This document shows positions 18,395-20,205 of a stretch of 64,000 nt of DNA, piece by piece; the stretch's first letter is position 1; every line of letters starts with the position of its first letter. Source of the DNA: Pavona decussata. Lineage: Eukaryota. Made by a program: the position numbers and the translations under genes. Below the pieces are notes generated by a model. That model had not been told where the DNA came from. It saw only the letters and a program-made list of their open reading frames with translations, and did not search any database. Where the stretch lies: NCBI GenBank assembly GCA_977016875.1, contig CDRNST010000002.1, forward strand, positions 2,790,001-2,854,000, read 5' to 3'.

Positions 18395-18486
18395 GTTAAA
18401 AAGAATTAAAAAATTGTTGACACTGGCTAAAAATATATACATATACTGGACGTTTTCAGTGTCAACAACTTTTTAATTCTTCTTAA
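18395..18486. repeat. Short inverted repeat
   Basis: TTAAAAAGAATTAAAAAATTGTTGACACTG / CAGTGTCAACAACTTTTTAATTCTTCTTAA. Confidence 0.7.
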
Positions 18487-18688
18487 AGGTAGCAGTAGTT
18501 CCTATTTCATGTGTGTGAACCAAAGGGTATAGTAAGAGCTATAATCAACAGTAAATGATAGATAGCACGCCGAGTTGGCTATCTGTCATCTTGTTACCAA
18601 CAAGTGCGAGTAAAATAATTGTTTTATTAAAAAAAAAAAAACACGAAAAATCGGCTTTTGCGATACTTTCTTTTCTCCCTGACGACTA

Positions 18689-19813
18689 CTGACTTAGTTC
18701 CTTATCTCCTCTGGGAGAATAGGGCCGTTGACTTGTTTTCTCCATCCCACCCTGTCTCTCGCAGCGATGACAGCCTCTCCCCAAGTGTCAAAACCCATCT
18801 TCTGCCTCTCTCCTTCCACAGTCCTTCTCCAGGTCTCTTTCGGCCGCCCTCTTTTCCTCTTCCCCTCCGGTGTCCAAGTTAGGGCAATGCGCGGGTTGTG
18901 ATCGCTGCTCATGCGCAGGACATGCCCTATCCACCGCCACCTCCGTCTCCTAATCTGCTCACTGATGGAGCAGGTTTTTGCTCGCCGTCTAACCTCTTCA
19001 TTTGTCACCTTCATTGGCCAATAGATCTTAAGTAGTCTACGTAAGCACTTGTGTAGGAATGTGTCCAGCTTTCTTTCGTTCCTCTTAGCCTTCTAAATCC
19101 AGACCATCTACACTCGCTAACTCCCAGTATACTGATCTTGTAACGTTGCATCTCCGATGTAACTTGAGCTGTTTTGCCAATGCTATACATTGTCCGTACA
19201 TTCCAACATCCAATTCTATACATAATTTTAGGACTAGCCAACGACCCTCTCAGTCCACGGGCTTCCTTGCGGGTTTGGCCCGCGTCCGTCATTCTGCCAT
19301 CATCCCATGTAATATAGTTATCCACCGGAGTTTGGCATGTCGTTGTGCTTGATCCAGTGTAGGTTTTCGTCAACAAATCTCTGGTTTCCGTAATCAGGTA
19401 TTTTTTACGGTGGAGGGTGATTGGCCCTACGACCAACTCCAATGGAGAAGGTTGGTGTTTTATCGGGATTTTCCTTCCCCTACGTAGCTGCCTTGCTGGG
19501 CTAACGGGTACTACCCCCCGAGTTTGATTTTGGAGTTTTCTTTCTCCTAGATGGGCTGCTTTTCACAGCTAAAGAGCCCCAACTGCCCTCTACTATCACC
19601 ATCCCACTTAATAGGCTGGTTACCCTGACGTAGTTTAGCCGGTGGGTCGACACCGTTGCCCGGGGTGTGGCCGCTGCAGTGTCTGCAGCTTCTAGGAGCC
19701 ATACGTCAGAGCTGGGTGTTGCGTGTGGACCAGTGCAGCTCAGTCACCCTGGGAAGGGTGCGACCGCCTCCCTACAAAGGTACTACCACAAGCAAGCACC
19801 CCCATACACCCCA
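18689..19813 (-). mobile_element. RTE-clade non-LTR retrotransposon with both ends intact and a large internal deletion; 12-bp TSD
   Basis: TSD CCCTGACGACTA at 18677-18688 and 19814-19825. The APE endonuclease N-terminus (RIGCWNVRTM...ILGVSECRWSG) is fused out of frame near 19082 to the RTE C-terminus (ERKLDTFLHKCLRRLLKIYWPMKVTNEEV...RRRRWRWIGHVLRM...GKRKRGRPKETWRRTV). No RT domain remains. Confidence 0.92.
19622..19812 (-). ncRNA. HDV-like self-cleaving ribozyme at the RTE 5' end
   Basis: P1 GGGGUGU (19812-06) / ACACCCC (19668-62). P2 GCUCUGACGUA / UACGUCAGGGU. P3 GGC/GCC. L3 begins UCCUAG, and P1.1 pairs CC with GG. J1.1/4 reads GGGCAAC as in genomic HDV. P4 CGGUG/CACCG. J4/2 GCUAA has the catalytic C at 19638. 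Confidence 0.85.
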
Positions 19814-20205
19814 CCCTGACGACTAACCCTTACTATATTTATAGTGGATGGTATAATGGCACATATACCATGGCTGCTAAACCAATCAAAACCCAGGAAC
19901 TGCGTAATCCAATGAGTCAGTTTTTAATAATAGCTCATAGAAGATTGAAGCTTATCGGAGCAGTAGAGAACACGAGCACACAGTACACACGCACACACGC
20001 ACGCACGTAAATCGGTCTAAAATGCTCAGTATTGCGTGAGAGACCTACACGGTAAAAAAATAAATCCACTACATATTGGCCTTCGTACAACTCGAGGCCC
20101 GTTCTCCCAAATTTCCCAAGGTAAAGCCTGAGATAGCTATCACGGAGCTCGGTGAGCTGAGAGCTAGAATGCAGGGAGTGTTGTTTGTGCCACATGAATG
20201 GCAAA

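Follow-up and report, generated by a model that had tools for sequence, protein, structure and literature searches.

A predicted HDV-like ribozyme with a hairpin inserted in loop L3 at the 5' end of an RTE-type retrotransposon of Pavona decussata

The retrotransposon and its 5' ends

The window, a 64,000-nucleotide stretch of a Pavona decussata contig, carries on its minus strand an RTE-type element whose full length is 3.55 kb but which an internal deletion has here shortened to a copy of 1.12 kb. The copy (19812-18689) is flanked by a 12-bp target site duplication (TSD), with the 5' copy (tagtcgtcaggg in the minus-strand reading) at 19814-19825 and the 3' copy at 18677-18688. The first 191 nt of the element (19812-19622, minus strand) hold the candidate ribozyme. 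In the remainder (18689-19621, minus strand) the 5' leader is followed by a fragment of the N-terminal endonuclease and, beyond the deletion junction at ~19086-19083, by the ORF's C-terminal end and a short AAGTC-type tail. Because it is internally deleted, the window copy is non-autonomous; its ribozyme core is intact.

The 602-Mb assembly contains four 5'-complete copies and ~20 more 5'-truncated 3' ends, with copy identities of 93-100% (most 97-99%). Two copies of ~3.55 kb encode Exo_endo_phos (APE), RVT_1 and DUF6451 domains in one reading frame region. These domains were identified in the copy on C289, and the window copy retains just both ends of the ORF. The 3' UTR is very short, the stop codon lying ~10-20 nt from the element end within an AAGTC/AAGTA repeat tail, and there is no poly(A). 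TSDs, in the copies that have them, measure 9-12 bp. The APE, RVT_1 and DUF6451 ORF, the short 3' UTR, the repeat tail, the TSDs and the length of 3.55 kb together fit an RTE-type non-LTR retrotransposon, the class to which the first-pass annotation had assigned the window copy and which the full-length copies bear out.

When the four 5'-complete copies were aligned with 50 nt of flanking sequence, similarity began exactly at one base, G1 (19812 in the window), and the flanks were unrelated. A TSD was found for three of the four. The 12-bp TSD of the C289 copy directly abuts G1, and one or two extra T residues lie between TSD and G1 in the window and C8 copies; in the window T19813 alone intervenes, so that G1 does stand one base from the TSD, as first noted from the sequence. 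Extra bases are common at the 5' junctions of non-LTR elements. Since the homology of the copies starts at G1 and the C289 TSD abuts it, we infer that the reverse-transcribed RNA began at G1, which is the HDV cleavage position. The earlier proposal that the predicted cut site coincides with the element's 5' end thus holds for all four copies. The same is seen in a second lineage: L074 and L076 belong to separate assemblies, their flanks are unrelated, and each of them starts at G1.

Two of the four 5'-complete copies, that in the window and that at G000:C8:1755017, have internal deletions at different points. As each retains both ends and is bounded by a TSD, either the RNA that was retrotransposed was already deleted or the reverse transcriptase jumped on its template while copying. 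In the window, a near-perfect AT-rich palindrome of ~90 nt (18396-18486) follows closely downstream of the element. It gives weak matches to plant miRNA precursors on both strands (MIR8742, 33.6 bits against a gathering score of 130) and is probably a MITE-like hairpin. In another assembly, a 5'-truncated relative that is 85% identical (L068:2600-3000) adjoins a tandem array of a ~20-bp unit (TATATGTCAGATGCCCC).

The double pseudoknot and its resemblance to known ribozymes

Ribozyme position p corresponds to window coordinate 19813-p, and the coordinates that follow refer to the minus strand. Between 19812 and 19622, no element of an HDV-type nested double pseudoknot is missing, and their order is the canonical one (P1-J1/2-P2-P3-L3-P3'-P1'-P1.1-P4-J4/2-P2'). 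P1 pairs GGGGUGU (19806-19812) with ACACCCC (19662-19668) through seven Watson-Crick pairs, and cleavage is predicted 5' of its first base, G1, which is also the first base of the element. The first pair, G19812-C19662, is a Watson-Crick G-C pair and not the G.U wobble of HDV. The two strands of P2, GCUCUGACGUA (19702-19712) and UACGUCAGGGU (19622-19632), form 11 bp, two of them G.U, and P3 is a 3-bp helix of GGC (19698-19700) and GCC (19669-19671). The canonical part of L3 is UCCUAGAA (19690-19697; RF00094 consensus UCCuCGcU), in which UCCUAG spans 19697-19692 and U19697 and G19692 are the equivalents of U20 and G25. P1.1 consists of two pairs between CC (19696-19695) and GG (19661-19660). 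That GG and J1.1/4 (GCAA) occupy 19656-19661 and, with the first base of P4, read GGGCAAC (19661-19655), the same as in HDV. P4 is a 5-bp hairpin, CGGUG-UCGACC-CACCG (19640-19655), and is followed by J4/2, GCUAAAC (19633-19639), with the putative catalytic C at 19638. Within GGCUAAAC, this C stands at the start of J4/2 with A residues after it. On re-reading, every coordinate and sequence that the first-pass annotation had given for these helices and core nucleotides was correct, the HDV-identical GGGCAAC and the position of C19638 among them.

L3 is not of the usual short kind (~7-8 nt). It totals 26 nt, made up of the 8-nt canonical part, a 17-nt hairpin with a 7-bp stem (GCUGCAG-ACA-CUGCAGC, 19673-19689) and the single nucleotide G19672. 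J1/2 (~93 nt, 19713-19805) is also long and forms a rod that closes beside P1 and P2, with a free energy of -41.8 kcal/mol when folded alone as a single sequence; it is a peripheral domain of the P1.2 type (PMC4908430). The first-pass annotation had singled out a self-folding J1/2 of ~90 nt as a conspicuous expansion. The rod is there, but it is not unusual: J1/2 loops of silkmoth R2 ribozymes measure 216-498 nt (PMC3774820), the Agam-2 ribozymes of Anopheles share a structured J1/2 (P1.2) domain with the window ribozyme, and a structured P1.2 helix in J1/2 makes cleavage faster by nearly three orders of magnitude (PMC4908430).

In the pseudoknot-free minimum free energy (MFE) fold, P2 and P4 form, as do the two expansions (the J1/2 rod and the L3 hairpin), and the 5' strand of P1 stays unpaired. 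The nested MFE has a z-score of only -1.5, as expected given that pseudoknots cannot be scored in a nested fold. GGGGUG of the P1 5' strand recurs at ribozyme positions 11-16, at the start of the J1/2 rod (19812-19797 covers both copies). P1' could pair with either of them, and ACACCC in the 3' strand of the rod could pair with P1; such alternative pairing might regulate or slow cleavage.

A helix-only descriptor proved unspecific, with many false matches in 128 kb (the two strands of the window). Topology alone is insufficient, so that the core nucleotides, covariation and the exact position of the 5' end have to carry the significance of the fold. The core descriptor allowed up to 40 nt in L3 and up to 150 nt in J1/2, and specified [U/C]CC in L3, a Watson-Crick P1.1 and C-N(1-2)-A in J4/2. 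In 712 kb of real sequence it matched copies of the window family only, and it matched one of 6000 dinucleotide shuffles of the region.

When the surrounding 9 kb was scanned against Rfam, no HDV family matched. In a local scan against all 4227 families, RF02682 (F. prausnitzii HDV-like) was the sole family reported, at 12.9 bits (E = 4.3), which is below its gathering score of 44 and serves as a pointer only; no Rfam HDV model reaches threshold. RF02682 aligns to the 3' half of the ribozyme (GGCAACGGU...ACCGGCUAA), and GGGCAA, UCCU.G and GCUAA agree with the RF00094 consensus. These scans are consistent with the earlier suggestion that searches with a fixed L3 length would miss the variant. 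L073, a relative with a canonical L3, is sub-threshold too (RF00094, 16.1 bits against 50). RF00094 and RF02682 have in common with the window ribozyme GGGCAA(C) after P1, the UCCU.G start of L3, GCUAA in J4/2, a 3-bp P3 and a 7-bp P1. The window ribozyme differs from both in its J1/2 (~93 nt against a few nt), its L3 hairpin and its short P4, and it resides in a retrotransposon, whereas they occur in viral or bacterial RNA.

HDV-like ribozymes process the 5' ends of R2, R4, L1Tc and RTE elements (Ruminski et al. 2011, as cited in PMC3774820). Retrotransposon ribozymes of this kind, including Agam-2 (as cited in PMC3774820 and PMC4908430), share with the window ribozyme the nested double pseudoknot, a J4/2 with the catalytic C, a 2-bp P1.1 together with UCC...G in L3, and a cleavage site (predicted here) at the first base of the element. 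The window ribozyme stands apart from them in its 26-nt L3 with a 17-nt hairpin, its G-C first pair and its sub-threshold scores with the Rfam HDV models. R2 ribozymes resemble it in 5' processing of a co-transcript (proposed here), a very large J1/2 and a conserved P1.1/P3/L3 block, which in R2 amounts to 15 nt (PMC3774820). They differ in two respects: R2 often cuts upstream, inside 28S sequence (PMC3774820), whereas the predicted cut here falls at the element's own first base, and the R2 L3 measures ~7 nt, whereas the L3 of the window ribozyme is interrupted by a helix.

Homologues, covariation and the L3 hairpin

Metagenome contigs were scanned with a pattern in which P3, the start of L3, GGGMAAC and GGCUAA were fixed and P1, P2, P4 and the L3 insert were free. 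Two contigs were recovered: L071 (SMVA01036140.1), in which a complete ribozyme lies on the 5' side of an APE-RT ORF of 1096 aa, and L072, a 5'-truncated copy. Relatives of the L071 protein, itself only 31% identical to the protein of the window family, led to further ribozymes, including L074 and L076 (90% identical to each other). The hairpin-bearing homologues (L071, L074 and L076) are built like the window ribozyme. Their J1/2 forms a rod 88-107 nt long (-37 to -43 kcal/mol when folded by itself; the rods were compared by single-sequence folds only), P2 has 10 bp, P3 is GGC/GCC, and the 8-nt start of L3 is followed by a 17-19 nt hairpin, one G and P3'. The window family and L071 also share non-catalytic J1/2 motifs, for example AGUACCUUUG and CACUGGYC.

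Searches of the window's own genome with the covariance models R1 and R2, in which 150 candidates were scored, and with the core pattern returned the same four copies only, and diverged copies may have escaped them. No model match was obtained in L075, L077, L078, L079 or L080, and the strict descriptor had no match in L075, L078, L079 or L080. Its match in L077 (6-bp P1, 47-nt L3) looked spurious, and a ribozyme look-alike in L078 yielded no clean fold. The closest protein relatives, P0001, P0002 and P0003, were discarded as ribozyme sources, as their contigs are 5'-truncated and without the leader.

The covariation alignment comprises the window family, L071, L074, L076 and L072; four of its rows are near-identical copies, which leaves ~4 independent lineages, several of them single metagenomic contigs. 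In the core alignment 97.4% of cells are paired, against 31-56% with the partners slid, and both sides have changed in nine pairs, including four in P2 and four of the five in P4; the shuffle control ignores relatedness. The copies within the genome are 97-98% identical, with single changes that are only disruptive, and because they are so similar the covariation comes from the lineages in other assemblies. All P1 pairs are kept in the window family (GGGGUGU/ACACCCC), L071 (AGGGUGU/ACACCCU), L074 (GGGGUAU/AUACCCU), L076 (GGGGUAU/AUACCCC) and L073 (GGGGAAA/UUUCCCC). Pair 1 is A-U in L071, G.U in L074 and G-C in L076, L073 and L081, and pair 6 changes from G-C to A-U across the homologues. P3 and P1.1 are invariant and hence uninformative. 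The catalytic C (C19638 in the window), the U, CC and G of L3 and the GG of P1.1 are likewise invariant in every homologue. Thus, the predicted fold is supported by compensatory changes in P1, P2, P4 and the L3 hairpin among homologues from other assemblies. Covariation of P1 to P4 among the genomic copies had been named as a check; it exists for P1, P2 and P4 in the homologues from other assemblies, but P3 does not vary and the genomic copies are too similar to contribute.

Position 155, the equivalent of HDV C41, is not constant: the sequence is GGGCAAC in the window copy, in L071 and in L073, but GGGAAAC in both full-length copies, those on C200 and C289 (L002 and L003).

The site of the L3 hairpin is constant in the homologues: it follows L3 nucleotide 8 and is itself followed by a single G and then P3'. 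Its size varies, from 7 bp with a 3-nt loop to 4-6 bp with a loop of 7-11 nt. With L072 included, each of the five outer pairs shows a compensatory change in at least one lineage, and 97.5% of cells are paired. The 7-bp hairpin described at the 3' side of L3 in the window is accordingly real, conserved and covarying, and the fixed site together with the compensatory changes in the stem suggests that the helix is under selection.

On related LINEs the same core is found together with an L3 of ordinary length. L073 (position 1359 of a Branchiostoma floridae x japonicum assembly), which weakly aligns to RF00094, has the L3 UCCUAGUC, a large P4, and UCCUAG, GGGCAAC and GGCUAA as in the window ribozyme. 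L081 and L082 have the L3 sequences UCCUUGU and UCCUCGU, thus UCCUUG or UCCUCG at the corresponding place, and GGGUAAC after P1. Like the window ribozyme, each of the three sits on a related APE-RT LINE, at its 5' side; unlike the window ribozyme, they have an L3 of 7-8 nt with no hairpin, and L073 differs further in its 5-nt J1/2 and its P4 domain of ~145 nt. Given these relatives, the L3 hairpin is a derived character that one sub-lineage of the ribozymes has conserved. In the literature searched, no helix or insertion in L3 was found described, which is weak evidence of absence. A long structured J1/2 is already known, and the hairpin after L3 nucleotide 8 is a derived variant of which we found no description there.

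The LINE lineage of L071, L074, L076, L073, L081 and L082 has no DUF6451 match and carries the same ribozyme module, with the L3 hairpin in some members. In three RTE families of the window's genome (B, C and D; 59% and ~50% protein identity) the 5' ends are ragged and the conserved 5' structure is another one. Across the RTE families that are 50-59% identical (L045-L067), this structure takes up ~190 nt of the first ~200 nt and includes a long-range stem (GGGUUAU/AUAACCC, GGGAUC/GAUCCC) as well as a small hairpin (ACCG/CGGU versus CUGG/CCAG), both of which covary. An HDV fold could not be fitted to the 5' structure of B, C and D even under very loose rules. That the module is shared at 31% protein identity while RTE relatives at 50-59% use another 5' structure suggests that 5' modules have been exchanged or replaced among LINE lineages.

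Proposed function, alternatives and significance

We consider it very likely that the first 191 nt of the element encode an HDV-like self-cleaving ribozyme, a reading in which the fold, the core nucleotides, the exact 5' ends and the covariation are observed, and cleavage, its chemistry and the role of the hairpin are inferred. The element would be transcribed within a longer read-through or host transcript, and the RNA would fold into the nested double pseudoknot and cut itself immediately 5' of G1 (19812), with C19638 of J4/2 acting together with a metal ion held by the L3/P1.1 core. The J1/2 rod, which is of a known type, would pinch P1 and P2 together. Cleavage would free an RNA with G1 as its first base, and this RNA could serve as the template for target-primed reverse transcription, so that full-length insertions would begin exactly at G1. 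The inserted hairpin, which comes after L3 nucleotide 8 and ahead of P3's 3' strand, would make a three-way junction out of L3. For the genomic HDV ribozyme, the last L3 nucleotides are dispensable for catalysis, and U27 can be deleted in fast-folding variants. This would make the end of L3 the most plausible site for an outward-pointing helix, and the hairpin most likely points away from the active site, where it may stabilise P3/L3 folding or offer a contact site.

L3 forms part of the active site of HDV-like ribozymes, and we know of no insertion that it is known to tolerate. The fold might thus be conserved while the version with the L3 hairpin no longer cleaves, acting instead as a structural 5' leader (in translation, RNP assembly or template recognition), with the uniform 5' end set by a precise transcription start. 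The L3 insertion, which we did not find described in the literature searched, and the G-C rather than wobble first pair speak for such a leader, as does a proposal that HDV-like ribozymes also promote the translation of retrotransposon mRNA (PMC4908430); a precise start could indeed give a defined 5' end. Every core nucleotide, however, the J4/2 C included, is invariant at 31% protein identity, a constancy that a purely structural role would not need, and in each of two separate lineages the 5' end coincides with the cleavage position. We regard a non-cleaving leader as improbable. Chance, by which a GC-rich 5' leader can simply be drawn as an HDV fold, has on its side the many false matches that the helix-only descriptor yields in ordinary sequence and the lack of an Rfam match above threshold. 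It is contradicted already by covariation in the core and the L3 hairpin, and also faces the specificity of the core descriptor (712 kb; 1/6000 shuffles), the recovery of independent homologues with a pattern that put no constraint on P1, P2, P4 or the hairpin, and the exact 5' ends at G1, which makes it extremely improbable.

Self-cleavage may also be combined with a hairpin that is a neutral passenger without a role of its own. Sister ribozymes with a 7-8 nt L3 on related LINEs indicate that the core needs no hairpin, and both loop and stem length vary. Against this, compensatory changes keep the stem at all five outer pairs in four lineages, and the insertion holds a constant site after L3 nucleotide 8 with one G next, so that we think a passenger hairpin unlikely. 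Returning to a cleaving ribozyme with a selected helix, we would go further only tentatively: it is possible, though by a little the less probable outcome, that the helix ("P3.1") leaving the catalytic loop defines a new structural subclass and that the whole module of core, J1/2 rod and L3 hairpin has been exchanged as a 5' cassette between distant LINE lineages.

Since L3 forms the active site, the descriptors and covariance models with which HDV-like ribozymes are usually found keep it at a length of ~7-8 nt. A helix that occurs naturally in L3 and covaries would mean that the loop tolerates a large insertion at one defined point, and current searches may therefore under-count the family. 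It would also offer ribozyme engineers a new insertion site beside the catalytic core, for example for aptamer-controlled switches, and because the set of ribozymes that share the core includes some with the hairpin and some lacking it, the effect of the hairpin can be tested directly. That one ribozyme module occurs on LINEs whose proteins differ greatly is relevant to the ways in which retrotransposons gain and swap their 5' processing modules.
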